Shown: piece by piece, positions 1,645-18,603 of the stretch
Layout: each line of letters starts with the position of its first letter
How positions within the stretch are numbered: the stretch's first letter is position 1
Sequence record: LC680884.1
Strand: one strand, 5' to 3'
Length of the DNA: 64,000 nt
Notes under the pieces: model-generated
What the model was told of the DNA's origin: nothing
Database searches by the model: none
Seen by the model: the letters and a program-made list of their open reading frames with translations, nothing else
Made by a program: the position numbers and the translations under genes

Positions 1645-1830
1645 TTATATTTGTTCATTATAAATTTCTCTAGTTATATCTTGAACTAATTTTGTGTCAT
1701 ATTGACCATCTAACTTAATTAAAACAGCTTCTAGAATCTTCTTAAAATTACGAATACCAAAAGTAAAATGGGTAAAGATAGTATTATCAGCAACCCATCT
1801 AATTTCTTTTTCTATTTCATTCACTCCCAT
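1645..1830 (-). CDS. hypothetical protein
   Basis: 61-aa ORF whose start overlaps the RNAP gene stop. Confidence 0.6.
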   Translation of the reverse strand: MGVNEIEKEIRWVADNTIFTHFTFGIRNFKKILEAVLIKLDGQYDTKLVQDITREIYNEQI

Positions 1831-3827
1831 TATTTTTCATCCTCTACTTTTCCATTTAGTTTATTTTCCCATTCTTCTTCTACATCATCAATAGAAAGAC
1901 CGAGACATGTAAATAAAGATTTAAGAATCTTACTTGTACCTGACTCTACATCTGAAAGATCAATATTGGTATCAAATGGATTTCCAGTTAATAATTGCAT
2001 AATAAGTTCTCTTCTATTAGTCTCATTATTAGAGTATGAATTTAGCATATCCATAATAGAACCCATTTCATTAGTAAGACTTAAGTTAGAAATCTCCATA
2101 TTACCAATACGTACAGGTGTTTTTGAATATAAGTCTTTATGCTCTTTAAAGTTCTTAGATTTAGCTGGTAGACCTCTTAGGTTCATAAATGATGTACTAC
2201 GAGCGCTAAATTTAGAATGCGGCTCATGTTTTAATCTAACCATATAAATTTCTCCAATAATTAAAGGAGTACTAATTCCCTCACATTTAAAGTAATCAAT
2301 ATGATCATAATGATCGTATAATTCCCAAAGTTCATCTAAACCAATATTACCAAAGAATGGCTTTTGACAGATAGGAATTCCATTTTCAATAATATCATTT
2401 AGAAACTCTTCTAATTCTGTTTTATTTAGACTATTAATGAATTCTTCCATTAATTCAGTTTCTTCTTTATTCACTCTATTTAAGAAATCAAGTAAGATGC
2501 TAACTTTTTCTTCATTACTTCCTGCTTCTTCCATATCTTTTCTAATGAATTTAGCAATCCAGTTTAATTCTTGTTCGATCAACTGACTTGGATTAAGGCG
2601 GTTAAATACACCAAGAGGATTAAGACAAATGTCTGCCTTGAGTCCTTTAAAACGTCCTTCAGCCACAGTAGGCATTTGATCATCAGGGAGTATTTTACTA
2701 ATTACACCTTTATTACCATATCTACCTGTAATCTTACTTCCTTTATTTAATGGTTCTTCTTCTAAAATTGTGAATTCCATAATAAAACCACTAAACTTAC
2801 TATTCTGATAAGTGTAAGAAATATTTTCATCAATTCTCATTTTACAATTATTATAGAAATGCAATAGCTTGTCTGAAACATTACTATCTTTACCTTCTAC
2901 AATATTTTTAAGTTTTTGATAAACATTATTAGAAAATTCTTTTTGCTTATTAATATAGTATAGAACTTGTTCATTATACTTCTGTACCTTTAATTCTTCT
3001 TCAGGTACATTAGAGAAAATCTCAATATCTACAATCTTACCATCAGCAAAGAATGGAGTATCTGAATCTCTCATTTCATTTAGATTCTTTAATTCATATA
3101 ATGCAGTGTTATAATCAAATCTTCTACGGCTAGCAATAATCTGATTTTTAATATGTTCTCCAATATCTGGGAATCCTTTATAGTTCTCATTATCACCATA
3201 TAGGTTAAGCAAGATATCATTTGTATTGACAGATACTTTTACTTTGTTAACACTATATGTTCCTAGCTTTTTAGCGGCACTTTCAGAGATTACAATAGCA
3301 TCCTCTAATGTTTCATTCTTATAACTAAAATATGCAGCATTTAAATTAACACCATAACCAAAATTCATATTTTCATCATAACAGGTATTCTTATATAATA
3401 CAGTATCTTTTTCAATTGTATCATCTTTCTTTAATGAATCAATTTTATCATTATCCCATTGAAAACCATAATGTTCAGTTAGAAACTCACATTCAGCTCT
3501 TTCAAATAATGTATATTCCCCAGTTTCCTGATCTTGTACAATAAGTACATAATTATAATCATTCTTATAAATTTTTTCAATAACCTTATAATTACTATTA
3601 GCCTTTCTATAACCTGCAGTTGAATACTTTCCAACTTGATTCTCAAAGTTAGTATAGACTAATGGCGGTTCAGCCTTTTGTAGAGTTACTGCCTGTGCTA
3701 AGTGAGAGCAGAACATTGTAGATCTATTACCGTCTGTTTTATTTGCATTAGGCATTAACAATTCCTCTGCTAAAAATCTATGTGAACCTTCATAATCTTC
3801 ATTCTTAATTACACTGATGTCATCCAT
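1830..3827 (-). CDS. phage multisubunit RNA polymerase beta subunit, C-terminal half (non-virion RNAP, AR9 gp089-like)
   Basis: Beta motifs R..MFCSH..QAV, EDAIVISES, GSKITGRYGNKGVISKI, DICLNPLGVFNRLNPSQ, GEIYMVRLKH, RIGNME; length and N-terminus match my recollection of AR9 gp089. Confidence 0.95.
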   Translation of the reverse strand: MDDISVIKNEDYEGSHRFLAEELLMPNANKTDGNRSTMFCSHLAQAVTLQKAEPPLVYTNFENQVGKYSTAGYRKANSNYKVIEKIYKNDYNYVLIVQDQETGEYTLFERAECEFLTEHYGFQWDNDKIDSLKKDDTIEKDTVLYKNTCYDENMNFGYGVNLNAAYFSYKNETLEDAIVISESAAKKLGTYSVNKVKVSVNTNDILLNLYGDNENYKGFPDIGEHIKNQIIASRRRFDYNTALYELKNLNEMRDSDTPFFADGKIVDIEIFSNVPEEELKVQKYNEQVLYYINKQKEFSNNVYQKLKNIVEGKDSNVSDKLLHFYNNCKMRIDENISYTYQNSKFSGFIMEFTILEEEPLNKGSKITGRYGNKGVISKILPDDQMPTVAEGRFKGLKADICLNPLGVFNRLNPSQLIEQELNWIAKFIRKDMEEAGSNEEKVSILLDFLNRVNKEETELMEEFINSLNKTELEEFLNDIIENGIPICQKPFFGNIGLDELWELYDHYDHIDYFKCEGISTPLIIGEIYMVRLKHEPHSKFSARSTSFMNLRGLPAKSKNFKEHKDLYSKTPVRIGNMEISNLSLTNEMGSIMDMLNSYSNNETNRRELIMQLLTGNPFDTNIDLSDVESGTSKILKSLFTCLGLSIDDVEEEWENKLNGKVEDEK

Positions 3828-10923: not shown

Positions 10924-11928
10924 TTATCCAAAATATGAACACTTAAGAACTTTACGTACTTTTAATATATCACTTGCTAATGAATCAACTGGTGAGTGGT
11001 ATAATTCAGCTTTTCCTATCTGATAAACACCCTCATTTTCAGTATCTGGACTTAATAAGAAACAGTAAACTCCAATCACCCTATTAATATTATTATTAAT
11101 AGAAATTAACAATGGGTACATCTGTCCCTTATATAACAGTCCTGAGAAAGCAAAACTAATATGCTTTGGTAGTGCTTTGTTGTTTACTAATTTATTATAT
11201 TCTCCTACAAAATGTCTTAATAAAAGATCCTTTTCATAAGATTTTTTGTAAGTAGTGTAATATTCTTTATTTCCATTTAAAGAAGTTCCAAATCTTCTTT
11301 CTAACATGCTAACTAATTTACTATCAAAAACATTTAATAAGTTAACAGTAGAGATACTATTAATTCGCATTATTCGATCCATATTCTCTAATTCATTATT
11401 ATATTTATTTCTTTTAAATACTGATTCCATTAACAAATCTTCTTCTAAAATATTAGTTTTTGTGATTCCCAAATGTGTAGTTTCAGTAATAACAGGATTA
11501 CTAAATACTAGGCTTATATTAATACTCTCAATAATTTTATCATATCTCGTATTATCCTTAATCATGTTTATAGATAAGATAACATTTTTATTTTCCTTTA
11601 AATTGTAATGGTGGCTAATATACTTTATATTATTTGATTTATCCTCATCTATATTTAGATCATAATTAGTAAATTGATAATTTTCTTTTAGTCTAGATTC
11701 TATTTGTTTAAATTTACTTTCAACTAATTTATTATTGGATTCTACAATTTTGATTGAGGGGAATGAATATTCTTTCTCAAAATTTGAATCATATTCTAAT
11801 AGCATATTATCTTTATCAATAATAATATTTTCCTTTAATTCTTTAGAAAAAAATGATTTTAAATTTTCTGCTAATGAAACAAAATCCCCTTTTATCTCAA
11901 GGGGATTGTTTTTACTTTTATTCTCCAT
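10924..11928 (-). CDS. hypothetical protein, possibly virion-internal
   Basis: 334-aa ORF right after the RNAP beta-C gene; acidic N-half rich in (I/L)xE motifs. Confidence 0.7.
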   Translation of the reverse strand: MENKSKNNPLEIKGDFVSLAENLKSFFSKELKENIIIDKDNMLLEYDSNFEKEYSFPSIKIVESNNKLVESKFKQIESRLKENYQFTNYDLNIDEDKSNNIKYISHHYNLKENKNVILSINMIKDNTRYDKIIESINISLVFSNPVITETTHLGITKTNILEEDLLMESVFKRNKYNNELENMDRIMRINSISTVNLLNVFDSKLVSMLERRFGTSLNGNKEYYTTYKKSYEKDLLLRHFVGEYNKLVNNKALPKHISFAFSGLLYKGQMYPLLISINNNINRVIGVYCFLLSPDTENEGVYQIGKAELYHSPVDSLASDILKVRKVLKCSYFG

Positions 11929-11932
11929 AATA

Positions 11933-12133
11933 TCACTTTCCTTTTTTATCTAATAGTTCTTCTAAATTAGTATCCTCTTTTAATAAATCATTCCCTAATC
12001 CAGCACCCATTAGATATACATACATGGTATTAAGAGTTTGATTTTCAGTAATATCATGACCTAAATCTTTTAGATAAGTATATCCATATAAATTAATATT
12101 TTTATACATATCTGTCTTTGCTACAGAGTTATC
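11933..12133 (-). CDS. second RNAP beta-C subunit (probable virion RNAP), exon 3
   Basis: DNSVAKTDMYKNINLYG aligns with bacterial beta SDDxxGRxKxYxxIxxG; preceded by intron terminal G at 12134. Confidence 0.85.
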   Translation of the reverse strand, partial: DNSVAKTDMYKNINLYGYTYLKDLGHDITENQTLNTMYVYLMGAGLGNDLLKEDTNLEELLDKKGK

Positions 12134-13564
12134 CAAGTTATCTTCCAATGAGCTCGCTACACTCATTGCGTTCTCATAATACTATTTAAAATAGTATTAA
12201 TGAACTGCTCTATGTTTCCATAGAAGTTGAGACTATATCTTCTAAGTTTCCTGTTTCCCAATATAGAAAATTTTCTATACTATACTTCATCCCAGAAGTA
12301 TACTACCAATAGCTTGTAGGGTACTCTACTTAATATAATCAAAATAATTAATATTAGCATTCTTGTAATATTTGTTAAAATTTACTACATTATTTTTATT
12401 AATTAATAATAGATTATATTTTTCGATAGTCGTTGAACTTTCTTTTATTAATTCTTTAATTATTATGTCTAGGTTTTTATTGATTTTGTAACTTATTCTA
12501 ATCAAAGTGTATTCACTATTTTTTATAAAATCATTCTTTTCTTGGTCTCTTTTTATCTGTGACAAGAAACCATTTTTATCATTAAATTTTTGGTGGAAAT
12601 GTTGGCTACCATCATACTCTATTAATAGGTTTAAACTAGGTATATAAAAATCAAATTTTTTACCTTTACCCAACTCTCTAATAGAATATTCTTGAATAAA
12701 ATAAATATTTAATTCATTTAATGTCTTTTTTATAACTTTAGAAAAGAAAGATTCATTATTAAGAAAATTACACTTTGGACAACGAGAATTTCTATGAATA
12801 AACTCTTTAGGGGAAGTTTTATATTTATGACCACAAATATTATGAATAATTTTTATAGGCGTATCAGTATTTATATACTCATCTAAAAAAGTATATTCTT
12901 CTCCTACTAATTTGCTAATTTCATTAACGAATTCCTTATTTGTTCTTTTAATATTATTAGCACATTTAGGACATCTTTTTCCACCATTTAGGAAATTATT
13001 AGGTGATACACAATATTTATATCCACAAATATTATGAATTACTTTTAAATTGTTATTAGTACCATTATATTTTTCTAGAAAGGTATAATCATTTTTAGTT
13101 ACTTTTTTTACTCTATTAATGAATTCCTCATTTGTCATTCTTGACCGATCAGCCATTTTTTGAACAGTACATTTAGGACATCTTTTTCCACCATTTAGGA
13201 AATCATTAGGAGTAACCATGTATATATTATTACAAATATTATGCTTTACCTTTATTTTAGTCAGTGATCGTACATACTTCTCTAAAAATGTATATTCTTC
13301 CCCTACTAACTCTATAACTTCATTCATAAATTCCTCATTGCTTTTTCTTCTAGGCATAAAATTTAATTACCTCCAACACTAAATTTAAATATATTTTTGT
13401 TTTAGCATTGTCAGCTCTTTTAAAGAATTATATAAAAGCTTAGCTGCTGATTGTCCAATCTTATTAGTTCTTATAACCTTCACGCTCACTGTTACCAGTC
13501 ACGTTGTGGTCTAATAAGCTCTAAGGAGTTTCCAGCAATTAAGGAAATTACGAGCCAATAATCT
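12134..13564 (-). mobile_element. group I intron (IA-like, 1431 nt) with endonuclease ORF
   Basis: 5' exon ends in T (GCT), intron ends in G; P TTGCTGGAAA, Q AATCAGCAG, R TTCAACGACTA, S AAGATATAGTC. Confidence 0.9.
12326..13357 (-). CDS. intron-encoded homing endonuclease (3x H..C..RCPxC Zn repeats plus Vsr/DUF559-like nuclease)
   Basis: Repeats EEF..V...EYTFLEKY...KHNIC..Y..PN.FLNGGKRCPKC; C-terminal FDFYIP..LLIEYDGSQHF..RD..KN..LIRI. Confidence 0.85.
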   Translation of the reverse strand: MPRRKSNEEFMNEVIELVGEEYTFLEKYVRSLTKIKVKHNICNNIYMVTPNDFLNGGKRCPKCTVQKMADRSRMTNEEFINRVKKVTKNDYTFLEKYNGTNNNLKVIHNICGYKYCVSPNNFLNGGKRCPKCANNIKRTNKEFVNEISKLVGEEYTFLDEYINTDTPIKIIHNICGHKYKTSPKEFIHRNSRCPKCNFLNNESFFSKVIKKTLNELNIYFIQEYSIRELGKGKKFDFYIPSLNLLIEYDGSQHFHQKFNDKNGFLSQIKRDQEKNDFIKNSEYTLIRISYKINKNLDIIIKELIKESSTTIEKYNLLLINKNNVVNFNKYYKNANINYFDYIK

Positions 13565-13672
13565 AGCTCGTGGTCCAAGGAATTCTTTTAAAGCATTATC
13601 AGCTCCTATAGCAACAAGACTATATGATTCAATATCAGATATTCTGGCAATTTTGTCATTACCTGTAACTTG
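13565..13672 (-). CDS. second RNAP beta-C subunit, exon 2 (108 nt, 36 aa; not in ORF track)
   Basis: QVTGNDKIARISDIESYSLVAIGADNALKEFLGPRA aligns with [39 protein letters not shown]. Confidence 0.9.
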
Positions 13673-14924
13673 CGTATCTTCCAGTAGACTCGCTACATCT
13701 ACTGCGTTCTCTTATGAACTGCTCTATGTTACCATAGAGACGAGACTATATCTTTATCCGTTAAGGATACCTCCTGTTTCCATTTAAGGGATTCTCACCC
13801 ACTCCAATAGCTTGAGCCGTACTCCTATTGCGGAATTTCACCGCTACTCACAATCGTATGATTGCTTTCGGATAGTCGTTGAACGTTTTGAATAAAATTC
13901 TCTAGAATATCATTGATTTCATTAAATTCTGTATAACGAATTCTTAATAGTGGTATATTATTTTTATTACAGAAATCATTTTTTATTTTATCTCTTTTTC
14001 TTACTCCTTCTATATAACTCTCATTAATAAATCCACCAGTTTTAAAATGTTGTTTTCCATCAAATTCAATTAAACAAAAAGTCTCATTATTCAAAGATAC
14101 CTTAAAATCAAATCTTAAAGGTCTTTTATCTCTGCATTTTTTCATTGAAAATTCAGTCTCATAAGAAAGATTCTTGTTCTCCAACCATTCTCTTATTTTA
14201 GATTCCCCATCAGATATATTTCTACAATTAGGACATCTATTATAGCATGTAGTGAAATTAATTGGTCTAATTAACCATTCATAACCACATTTTTCATGTC
14301 TCATTAAAATTTTAGTTTCACTATTCTTATATTCTGAGAGAACTGAATATTCGTCACCAACTATTTCAAAGACTTTTTCCTTAAATTCTTCAGTTGTAAG
14401 TTTCTTACTTCCTCCACAGATATTACAACCATATCCATTGAGAAGATTATCAGGTCTTACTTCCCATTTATTTCCACATTTATTATGTTTAACTGGTAAA
14501 TGTGTCCGGTTATTTATATAATTACCTAATATGGTGTATTCATCATTATATTTATCTTTTACTTTTTTAATAAAAGAACTATGAGTTAATTTTGAGTTTT
14601 TTAAAGGAGAACAATAATGACATCTTTGGTTTCGTCTAAAATTTCTATAATTTGTATTGAATTTTTTCCCACATACTTTGTGTTTAACCTCAATCATAGT
14701 GTTCTTATAACCATTAAATATACCACTTATAAAAATAAAATCTTTATTTAATTCGTTTACAGTCTTTTTTAAATCCATGATTTCCACCAACCTAACCTCA
14801 TTTTTAGTTAATTAAATGTTAGGTTTTTATTCAAATTCGCTTCTGATTGTCCTAAAAATTAGGATATCCCAGAAATTAAGGAGAGTGTTTGCCATTATAT
14901 TGCTATAATGGAGAGCCAATTATA
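13673..14924 (-). mobile_element. group I intron (IA-like, 1252 nt) with endonuclease ORF
   Basis: 5' exon ends GGT, intron ends ...GAAGATACG; Q AATCAGAAG, R TTCAACGACTA, S AAGATATAGTC; 3' part resembles the neighbouring intron. Confidence 0.9.
13825..14790 (-). CDS. intron-encoded homing endonuclease (Zn repeats plus Vsr/DUF559-like nuclease)
   Basis: Three H(K/E).CG...CxxC repeats; PLRFDFKV..LIEFDGKQHF..RDKIKN..LLRIRY. Confidence 0.85.
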   Translation of the reverse strand: MVEIMDLKKTVNELNKDFIFISGIFNGYKNTMIEVKHKVCGKKFNTNYRNFRRNQRCHYCSPLKNSKLTHSSFIKKVKDKYNDEYTILGNYINNRTHLPVKHNKCGNKWEVRPDNLLNGYGCNICGGSKKLTTEEFKEKVFEIVGDEYSVLSEYKNSETKILMRHEKCGYEWLIRPINFTTCYNRCPNCRNISDGESKIREWLENKNLSYETEFSMKKCRDKRPLRFDFKVSLNNETFCLIEFDGKQHFKTGGFINESYIEGVRKRDKIKNDFCNKNNIPLLRIRYTEFNEINDILENFIQNVQRLSESNHTIVSSGEIPQ

Positions 14925-16166
14925 ACCCGATTTCATGTTTCTTTGTGCAATATCAAGAGAATAAGTATTCTTTTTACTTAGAATTTGTTGTACTCGCTTA
15001 ATTGTAATATAACCAACAGGTACTTTATATGCAGTTCTAATAGGATCATTTTTATGACCATCATGTCGAAGATATACATACTCATCAGTTGGTACTTTTA
15101 AGATATCTAGTGCTTTTTTAATTTGCTTTAATGAAGGTTCACTTTTATTAGGTAAAATTTCAAGATAAAAATTTTCATCTTCATCTTTTAGGAATTTTTT
15201 CATATATCTATCAAATTGTTCATCATTCATTTTACCAAAGAACTCTTTATATTTTCTCAAGTTAGCTCCAGTATCATCTAAAATTGAAAGTACCTTATAT
15301 ATTAAATCTTCTACCTTTTGTCTCTTTGATAGATTCTTTGGTGCGGCTTCTAGTAGTTGTTCATCTACTGATTCTTTTATATTTTTTTCAAATAATTCAA
15401 AAGGATCTGATTCACTGATTGGCTCTTTAGTTATTTTTTCTACGGTAAGCGTTCCATCATTATTTATTTGAATTTCCCCATAAGTAGCTAAATGTAGAAC
15501 CATTCTTTTTGTATCTTCTTCAGAGCTTAATACTTTATTAGAATTCTCTATTTCATCTTTCATCATTTCTCTTGATGCTTCTAATAATAATTTATTTTTT
15601 GATACAATTGTACCATACTCTTTTTTTAGAAAACTATACATCTTATCAAAAATTTCTTTATCTGTTAGTTTATTAGGACGCTCATCTGTATTAGAGAATG
15701 CCTTTTGATTAGAATAGAATTTCCAATAATGACGAATCATAGCTTCAATTCTCAATATTGACATCCTATCTGCATCTGCAATAACCTTTGAATATAAAGA
15801 TGTAAATATTCCTGTTTCTCTACTTGTACCATCGTGTTCTTTACAAGCAGATTCAATAATCTCCATTTGACTTCCATCAAAATATCTTAACAAAAATTGA
15901 TCTGCTTTTATGCTCATTAATGTATTAAAATTATTTTCATCTTCTTCAATATAACCAAAATCATGCATTACTGCAATTGTAAAACACATATTGTAATCTA
16001 AATGTAATTTTTCAGCTAACTGTAAACTAAAATCAATAGTATCGTATAATTTATCTTCATCAATATTTTGACTTGCTATAAATTTTGGAACAAATTCCTT
16101 GTCACAATATTGTACTAGATCATATTGAACTCTTTCTATGTTCCGAATACCTTTAAAAAATGACAT
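14925..16166 (-). CDS. second RNAP beta-C subunit, exon 1, with N-terminal HD-hydrolase domain (spliced product about 516 aa)
   Basis: MHDFG, EHD, IADADR (HD motifs), then VPVGYITIKRVQQILSKK (beta GYMYMLKLxH region); ends ...NMKSG at the splice site. Confidence 0.85.
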
Positions 16167-16192
16167 AATAATCCTCCTACTTATCTAGTCTA

Positions 16193-16229
16193 TAATTAAT
16201 TGTTGTCTTCTTCAATAAACAATATATTA
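16193..16229. promoter_or_regulatory. divergent pair of late-type promoters (AACA-N6-TA)
   Basis: Minus strand AACA-ATTAAT-TA (16204-16193); plus strand AACA-ATATAT-TA (16218-16229); matches the published AR9 late consensus as I recall it. Confidence 0.7.
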
Positions 16230-17274: not shown

Positions 17275-18603
17275 TTATAATCGTTCTGTTACTTCTTGAG
17301 CTAAAGGAGATCTTTGATTTTCTTCAGTTTTAAAAGTGATTTGTCTGCAAAGTGAACTACCTTTCATTTTATCAGAAGCATATGCTAAACCATTAACAGC
17401 TTTAGTTAAATAAGGATGATCAATCTGATCAGTATCTCCACAAATAACAATTTTTGTACCATAACCAACACGAGAAAGAATACCTTTCATTGCTTTAGGT
17501 GTAACATTTTGTGCTTCATCTATAATAATAAAAGTATTAGGAATAGATCTTCCTCGTAAGTATCCAACTGCTTGGGTAACGATAGTTTCTGTTTCAAATA
17601 GATTATTTATTACTGATTGTTCATCAATTAATACTTCTAAATTATCCATAATAGGGCGCATTAATGGTGCTATTTTTTCATTTTCATCTCCCGGAAGGAA
17701 TCCAAGTGTTTCTTCCATTAAAACATTTGGTCTACAAACTAAAATCCGTCTATATTCTTGTCTATCAACTACTGTATCTAGTGCTGAAGCAATTGATAGA
17801 AAAGTTTTAGCTGTTCCTGCTGGACCTTTTAGTATTACCAATGGTGTTTCTTTTGGAGTTTGCATTAATGCATCAATAGCAAATCTTTGAGCCGCATTTT
17901 TAGGTTGGACTTGATAAGGATTATATTCTCCAAAAATTAACTTTTTAATATAACCATTTGTATAGTAACCTAAACCCGTTTGATTTAAATCTGTATTTGA
18001 CATTAGGGTAATATATTCATTCTCTGTTAAGATACTAGGATCAATAATATTACCGTCCATATCATACATTTCAGTTGTTAATGTATCGATAGTGCCTTCA
18101 GAGAAGAATAAATTTAGATCATCTTCTGTTAATAAGATATCTCGTCTACCTGAATATTCATCTTCAACTCTATCAGTAATAAAATCTTCATTTTGAATCT
18201 CAAGAATAGTTGCCTTAAGACTTCTTAAAGGACTTTTTGTTACAAAATGTACATCTTCACCTTGATTTATTAAATATTGACAGACTTGAAGCATTTTATT
18301 ATCATTATCATTTTTATTCCAGCCATCTGGCATTTCAATATCAGCATAATTAGTTTCAATGACAATAATACCCTCATTATCCATCTCTATACCTTCAGTA
18401 ATATTGCCTTGCTTACTCAGTTCATTAATATATCTAATAGCATCACGAGCATTTTTTCCTGATTCATCACTTGATTTTCTACGCTTACTTAATTCTTCAA
18501 TAACTGTTTCTGTTATTACAATCTTATTATCCTCAAAAGAAAATAATGATTCAGGGTAATGACATAGTACTGATGTATCTAAGACAAAAGTTTTATTGCT
18601 CAT
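17275..18603 (-). CDS. phoH: PIN domain-PhoH ATPase (PhoH2/YlaK-like)
   Basis: FVLDTSVL..VIEEL (PIN); GPAGTAKT, YLRGRS, IIDEAQN, GDTDQID (PhoH). Confidence 0.92.
   Translation of the reverse strand: MSNKTFVLDTSVLCHYPESLFSFEDNKIVITETVIEELSKRRKSSDESGKNARDAIRYINELSKQGNITEGIEMDNEGIIVIETNYADIEMPDGWNKNDNDNKMLQVCQYLINQGEDVHFVTKSPLRSLKATILEIQNEDFITDRVEDEYSGRRDILLTEDDLNLFFSEGTIDTLTTEMYDMDGNIIDPSILTENEYITLMSNTDLNQTGLGYYTNGYIKKLIFGEYNPYQVQPKNAAQRFAIDALMQTPKETPLVILKGPAGTAKTFLSIASALDTVVDRQEYRRILVCRPNVLMEETLGFLPGDENEKIAPLMRPIMDNLEVLIDEQSVINNLFETETIVTQAVGYLRGRSIPNTFIIIDEAQNVTPKAMKGILSRVGYGTKIVICGDTDQIDHPYLTKAVNGLAYASDKMKGSSLCRQITFKTEENQRSPLAQEVTERL

Follow-up and report, generated by a model that had tools for sequence, protein, structure and literature searches.

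The minus strand of the window, by which we mean the whole 64,000-nucleotide stretch of record LC680884.1 that was analysed, carries a gene in three exons whose predicted 516-aa product joins an HD-fold domain, a disordered acidic linker and the C-terminal fragment of an RNA polymerase β subunit (Table 1). The 4.5 kb around the gene are 100% identical to Bacillus phage PBS1 (MF360957, NC_043027, LC680884), and AR9 shares 96% DNA identity with this stretch across 77% of its length; AR9 and PBS1 are one species, Takahashivirus PBS1. By sequence comparison, the gene is the PBS1 ortholog of AR9 gp078. The G+C content of the window is approximately 27%, and no tRNA genes were found in it. The exons were mapped by alignment with Goe21_00920, the uninterrupted gene of phage Goe21, whose intronless product is, like the spliced PBS1 protein, 516 aa long. 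The open reading frame at 14895..16166 (minus strand) has 423 codons, the first 414 of which (16166..14925) constitute exon 1, the last nine being intron sequence. The exon 1 protein has no residue differences from Goe21 and two in 414 aa from AR9 (A275T and I295V), and its first ATG is preceded by a perfect Shine-Dalgarno match. A sigma-70 promoter scan gave nothing above shuffled sequences. Just past the exon 3 stop codon, at 11883..11907, there is a G+C-rich hairpin of 9 bp with a T-run behind it, terminator-like on both strands, which falls inside the beginning of the following ORF (10924..11928).

Table 1. Features of the three-exon gene and its predicted product, in window coordinates
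Feature	Position	Strand	Basis
5' leader with Shine-Dalgarno AGGAGG, 7 nt upstream of the ATG at 16166	16167..16196	-	
Exon 1, 414 codons, ending ...NMKSG, final base U	14925..16166	-	Goe21_00920 alignment
HD-fold domain (modelled), aa 1-240 (H55, H68-D69, H111-D112, D131, D133)	15447..16166	-	AlphaFold, Foldseek, relatives, residue table
Disordered acidic linker (predicted), aa 241-281, four [IL]xE triplets	15324..15446	-	pLDDT, motif counts
Predicted prohead-protease site L271-L272-E273/A274 (slash, cut)	15345..15356	-	Conservation in homologs
Start of RNAP β C-terminal fragment, aa 282-414	14925..15323	-	PHROG 3233; RpoB profile match
Group I intron 1, 1252 nt, final base G	13673..14924	-	AR9 copy matches RF00028; core identical
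Homing-endonuclease ORF in intron 1, 321 aa	13825..14790	-	PHROG 559/9084/7140, E 4e-74; weak Pfam zinc-finger, DUF2726
Exon 2, 36 codons (QVTG...GPRA), final base U	13565..13672	-	Junction alignment
Intron 2, 1431 nt, final base G	12134..13564	-	Junctions, P1-like helix, core similarity
Homing-endonuclease ORF in intron 2, 343 aa	12326..13357	-	PHROG 559, E 6e-84; weak Pfam PvuRts1I-like, DUF559
Exon 3, 66 codons and stop, C-terminal end of β fragment	11933..12133	-	Alignment, PHROG 3233

Both introns are located within the most conserved stretch of the β fragment, and both satisfy the group I junction rule, the base ahead of the 5' splice site being U and the final base of the intron G. The AR9 copy of intron 1, which is 328 nt long and has no endonuclease ORF, matches Rfam RF00028 over its full length (85.4 bits, E 1.5e-22, the gathering score being 50), and the PBS1 intron consists of this same core, 100% identical, together with a 924-nt insert carrying the endonuclease ORF. 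Rfam scans of the whole window and of 11700-15200 gave zero matches at gathering level, owing to the endonuclease ORF inserts: the shorter AR9 intron scores 85 bits. Intron 2 may be assigned to group I from its junctions, a P1-like helix across the 5' splice site (13571..13550), and its similarity to the core of intron 1, with one core stretch 90% identical. Within intron 2, at 12198..12243, a stretch of 44 nt is 95-100% identical to Enterococcus, Staphylococcus, Vibrio and Pseudaeromonas phage genomes; the group I core motif AAGATATAGTC, which is also present in intron 1, lies inside it. Intron content differs among near-identical phages. There are two introns in PBS1, each with an endonuclease ORF, two in AR9, where intron 1 is ORF-less, and none in Goe21, which has synonymous differences directly beside both insertion sites. 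The homologs P0007 and P0013 are truncated after residue 385, suggesting a third intron site in other phages.

The splicing of this gene is overlooked by the PBS1 GenBank record. In GenBank and RefSeq the exons are entered as separate genes, 269 ('hydrolase', exon 1) and 272 ('hypothetical protein', exon 3), exon 2 is omitted, and intron sequence makes up the last nine codons of gene 269 as well as the opening codons of gene 272. The PhoH product name in the same record sits on the small neighbouring gene 267, apparently through a one-gene shift; a PIN-PhoH fusion is encoded at 17275..18603 on the minus strand (Pfam PhoH, E 3e-54; PIN_4, E 2e-21). Elsewhere on the minus strand, at 1830..3827, is the gene for the 665-aa β C-terminal subunit of the non-virion RNA polymerase, the ortholog of AR9 g089. 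An intron-free copy of the three-exon gene (P0001) is found in a contig of a B. subtilis assembly (DA469_21530, partial), where it is 100% identical over exon 1 and carries on into exons 2 and 3, so the sequenced bacterial sample must have contained a PBS1-like phage.

By profile comparison, residues 282-516 are the C-terminal fragment of RNA polymerase β. The profile PHROG 3233, 'RNA polymerase beta subunit', matches aa 280-405 with an E-value of 5e-19, and exon 3 matches its positions 174-223, which are the end of the profile. A profile of the family matches E. coli RpoB at 1249-1306 (E 0.004), a match that also spans exons 2 and 3, and nearly all of the remaining profile matches are to the same region of RpoB. 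A profile comparison with the non-virion β C-terminal subunit gave no match; the profile used was too shallow for that result to be evidence against homology.

What kind of protein precedes the polymerase fragment? HD-family motifs are found at aa 67-71 (MHDFG), 110-112 (EHD) and 129-134 (IADADR). The domain does not reach the Pfam HD (PF01966) threshold, scoring 18.8 bits against a gathering value of 22, and NCBIfam gave it no meaningful name. In an AlphaFold model built on 14 homologs, aa 1-240 form a confident, all-helical domain with pLDDT mostly 70-95, and in a Foldseek search of the PDB all 14 best matches are HD hydrolases (probability 1.00, target TM 0.55-0.66), the best being B. subtilis YpgQ, with E. 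coli YedJ among the others. An exhaustive phmmer search with the domain recovered 168 relatives; eight of the top ten that were scanned pass the Pfam HD threshold at 27-57 bits, the phmmer E-values of the scanned HD relatives being 1e-13 to 1e-17, and four of the eight are stand-alone proteins of about 210-240 aa. The model and these relatives place aa 1-240 in the HD fold, in a YpgQ/YedJ-like form with the full H/HD/H/D set in PBS1, and uphold the earlier note, made from the sequence alone, in its expectation that the N-terminal region would fold as HD. Counting PBS1, nine of the 14 aligned HD-type sequences have a complete metal-binding set; in the other five it is eroded, HD having become HE, HQ, FK or VS and the first His Tyr, Gln or Ser. 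YpgQ is reported to be a Mn-dependent (d)NTP pyrophosphohydrolase, and the PBS1 domain is, according to the model, built like a nucleotide (pyro)phosphohydrolase of the YpgQ/YedJ type, with all metal-binding residues retained. The possibility that the HD domain is the PBS dTMP phosphatase of uracil-DNA synthesis was considered and rejected: that enzyme is a different PBS1 protein, of family PF06941.

The linker between the two parts is predicted to be disordered, with pLDDT below 50 for aa 243-278, and is acidic, with ten D/E in 41 residues. The four (I/L)xE triplets to which the earlier note had drawn attention are present at 250, 258, 263 and 271, within the acidic stretch aa 249-277, and are four of the nine in the 414 aa of exon 1. 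The enrichment is modest: in shuffled sequences P was ~0.0004 when the 29-aa window was fixed, 0.027 when it could lie anywhere, and 0.006 when the composition of the linker was kept. The last triplet (271) is the only one conserved widely, the second (LFE) being partly conserved. We surveyed the site in 51 homologs of the β fragment, 39 of which are extended at the N-terminus by 15 aa or more. In 38 of these 39, [LIF]xE is found 6-13 aa ahead of the conserved R282, and the residue that follows is Ala in 29 of the extended homologs. The strict form [ILVFM]xE[AS] occurs at the site in 33 of the 39, compared with 30 of the 590 windows taken as background from other parts of the extensions. Homologs without an extension begin 3-7 aa ahead of the same Arg, and two others have a leader of only 17-18 aa with the cut site inside it; the predicted 243-aa mature product therefore equals the stand-alone subunit. 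Conservation thus points to a cut between E273 and A274, and the neo-N-terminus that had been proposed (A-APKNLSK, starting at A274) coincides with this predicted site. In relatives with several modules there are, in a few cases, possible inter-module cut sites. Codons 241-300 contain no in-frame ATG, GTG or TTG, and synthesis of two proteins through an internal start, which the earlier note had named as an alternative, is therefore excluded. Its overall reading of the gene, an HD domain, an acidic linker and an RNAP β C-terminal part spread across three exons, is borne out by the AlphaFold model, Foldseek, PHROG 3233 and the Goe21 alignment.

How does this gene product relate to what is already on record? 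The GenBank note of AR9_g078 (AMS01162.1) reads 'proteolysed protein, contained only RNAP domain is found in virions, virion RNAP subunit; HD family phosphohydrolase ...', and it is on this annotation note that the virion presence of the RNAP part rests. In AR9, gp078 has been grouped with gp125, gp145, gp189 and gp264 as late-expressed virion RNAP subunits (PMC5312081). A review counts the HD domain as part of the virion RNAP in Bacillus jumbo phages (PMC7598289), and a comparative study describes the HD fusion in 'group 1 Bacillus phages' (PMC7824862). The HD-RNAP fusion is already published for AR9, PBS1 and BpSp (PMC7598289, PMC7824862), and the idea that it was unrecorded has to be given up. 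What this analysis adds is the cut site shared by homologs, the finding that no internal start exists near the domain boundary, the loss of catalytic residues in some relatives, a gp21-type protease together with sites of the same type in the capsid precursor, and the modular slot described below. In other phages, the homolog is absent from the list of 23 proteins in the BpSp virion proteome, and the Staphylococcus phage homolog UFVDC4_00134, which has a 447-aa extension, was found in virions by a single peptide of unlocated position.

To judge from its profile matches, PBS1 encodes a prohead protease of the T4 gp21 type (Peptidase_S77). In AR9, g114 carries the annotation of a T4-type prohead core protease; its two exons match successive parts of Pfam Peptidase_S77 with 17.6 and 26.4 bits, both just under the 27-bit cutoff, and the PBS1 copy of the gene is 100% identical. 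The motif of T4 gp21 has the form L/I-x-E. The motif of phiKZ-type proteases is A/S/G-x-E, with AXE in SPN3US (PMC7411985). The earlier note had invoked both systems: the T4 half of the analogy is apt, the L-x-E form being relevant and a gp21-type protease present, whereas the phiKZ-type motif differs. In T4, gp21 strips N-terminal targeting peptides from ejected proteins, and the propeptides of SPN3US head proteins are 111-130 aa long (PMC7411985). The gp23-like capsid precursor family of these phages (AR9 locus L006:40992-42587, alignment A5), which serves as an independent check, has two invariant Glu residues, in the contexts [LF]xE23/[SAT] and [LIFM]xE84/[SA], both ahead of the conserved body; these are probably maturation cuts, in which case the mature capsid protein would start at residue 85.

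The locus, in our view, probably encodes a precursor of the β C-terminal subunit of the PBS1 virion RNA polymerase (vRNAP), the linker of which is cut by the head protease and the HD domain of which is a removable pro-region absent from the mature virion. The late transcript would be spliced twice by what are, by homology, self-splicing group I introns, and translation from the ATG at 16166 would give a single 516-aa protein that presumably enters the prohead alongside the remaining subunits of the virion RNAP. There the linker would be cut after L271-L272-E273 by the head maturation protease of T4 gp21 type, proteolysis being indicated by the note in the AR9 record and the position by conservation. 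The 243-aa product A274-K516, comparable to the stand-alone subunits of 236-255 aa in other jumbo phages, would remain in the head and be injected within the polymerase that reads the early genes, and the 273-aa N-terminal HD-fold piece would be lost. A pro-region that is not retained in the mature virion could act only before or during head maturation, and any catalysis would therefore not take place in the next host. In our reading the N-terminal part is thus an accessory, interchangeable piece that, if active, is active before or during maturation. That the HD domain is cut off during head maturation is very probable. The earlier note had it that the polyprotein either delivers a phosphohydrolase or is cut from one. 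The cutting agrees with the word 'proteolysed' in the AR9 annotation, with the conserved site and with the protease; an injected HD domain is not supported, as the same annotation places only the RNAP domain in virions and catalytic residues are eroded in five of 14 sequences. Three considerations count against a discarded pro-region. The AR9 annotation reports what amounts to non-detection of HD peptides in one virion proteome, which is not proof of absence; a folded 31-kDa domain is far above the known size of T4 propeptides; and the intact catalytic set of PBS1 together with the variety of modules in relatives fits functional cargo better.

[quoted passage not shown] The contents of the slot (P0010, P0017, P0029, P0038, P0209 and others; corresponding to 15345..16166 in the window) include an HD domain, an HD domain with a P-loop kinase-like domain, a common N-terminal domain with GNAT or NTPase, zinc-ribbon proteins of 440-590 aa, a triple of HD, P-loop and GNAT, a leader of 17 aa, or nothing at all. 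The combination of HD and P-loop kinase in P0010 might speculatively be read as an 'end-healing' pair. In P0209 the HD catalytic residues are eroded. An 836-aa relative has a degenerate HD domain, a P-loop domain and a Naa30/RimI-like GNAT domain, followed by SILDE/A and the β fragment, the latter 76% identical to that of the Goe21 protein, whose exon-1 part is the same as in PBS1. The slot is accessory, as there are relatives with an eroded HD domain, with other enzyme modules, or with none. Conservation of the fusion in relatives, which the earlier note had suggested checking, is found at the cut site (38 of 39) and not in the HD domain, which is variable and gives way to other modules or to an empty slot. 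The N-terminus of this subunit could be viewed, in Gram-positive jumbo phages at large, as a general slot for exchangeable modules released by protease (HD, P-loop kinase-like, GNAT, zinc-ribbon, sometimes three in a row) that are carried into the capsid by the polymerase and freed at the conserved L-x-E/A, at least some of them being injected, as effectors that act early against the metabolism or defence of the host; in this full form the proposal is doubtful.

Could the PBS1 domain itself be cargo of this sort? The HD domain would then, as in the 'delivers' option of the earlier note, ride the polymerase subunit into the head, be freed by the protease, stay in the capsid, be injected with the DNA, and act early on nucleotides or signalling nucleotides. 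The exchangeable enzyme-like modules of the slot (HD, P-loop kinase-like, GNAT and zinc-ribbon) form a pattern typical of effectors, the catalytic residues of PBS1 are intact, and, as the subunit is packaged in many phages where it lacks the extension, packaging does not require it. T4 Alt, an injected enzyme processed by gp21, provides a precedent (PMC7411985). However, it is the RNAP domain alone that the AR9 annotation places in virions, catalytic residues are eroded in five of 14 HD-type sequences and in P0209, and the gene is late, with a putative activity; delivery of the HD domain into the host therefore seems rather unlikely. The opposite possibility is a pro-domain to which catalysis is irrelevant, which, late in infection, holds the subunit in an inactive or unassembled state, or aids its incorporation, until it is removed by the protease. 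The vRNAP, made late, must be barred from the early genes (PMC5312081), several relatives have lost catalytic residues, and the long targeting propeptides of SPN3US are a precedent (PMC7411985). Yet in many relatives the extension is absent or consists of a leader of just 17-18 aa, so that such a role cannot be essential, the slot is occupied by unrelated domains, and the full metal-binding set is present in PBS1 and in eight of 13 HD-type relatives. A domain of purely structural or inhibitory purpose is, on these grounds, quite improbable.

The remaining alternatives dispense with cleavage of the linker. The HD domain might stay attached and work with the polymerase, for example on RNA 5' ends or active-site nucleotides, as the placement of the HD domain within the virion RNAP of Bacillus jumbo phages by a review would allow (PMC7598289), or two proteins might arise through an internal start. 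The AR9 note describes the protein as 'proteolysed', the disordered linker contains a conserved cut site, and codons 241-300 are without a start codon; both are highly improbable. A removable pro-region, cut off by the head protease, thus remains the reading that we prefer.

Since the fusion and its proteolysis were already on record, no new category of protein is proposed here. The analysis makes the role of the HD domain easier to test: a single bond, E273-A274, is named as the predicted cut, an internal start is ruled out, and the slot is seen to be accessory and modular. If the modules are indeed effectors that are released, the virion RNA polymerase would serve to deliver phage enzymes, which would be of interest for phage takeover of the host and for anti-defence.

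The closest known counterpart, AR9 gp078, likewise has two intron sites (annotated as a three-part join), the same domain order, and as neighbours PhoH, the virion protein g077, and g080. Unlike in AR9, intron 1 of PBS1 holds the additional 924-nt insert, with a second homing-endonuclease ORF, and the PBS1 record annotates the exons as separate genes. The stand-alone vRNAP β C-terminal subunits of jumbo phages (PHROG 3233, about 225-255 aa) are homologous to PBS1 aa 280-516, and the predicted mature product has their length and start; they are without the N-terminal domain, some having a 17-18-aa leader that bears the L-x-E/A site. YpgQ of B. subtilis (PDB 5ihy and 5dqv) and YedJ of E. coli (3gw7) have in common with the phage domain the helical HD core and the H...HD...H...D pattern, whereas the phage domain is only 13-15% identical to them, falls below the Pfam threshold, and is fused. 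The proposed processing is reminiscent of that of the T4 gp21 substrates (IPI-III and Alt) and of the SPN3US and phiKZ head proteins, from which an N-terminal piece is likewise cut after Glu by a protease of the gp21 family. The pieces removed in T4 are 10-20 aa long and those in SPN3US 111-130 aa, with A-x-E as the motif, whereas the PBS1 piece would be a folded, enzyme-type domain of 273 aa.
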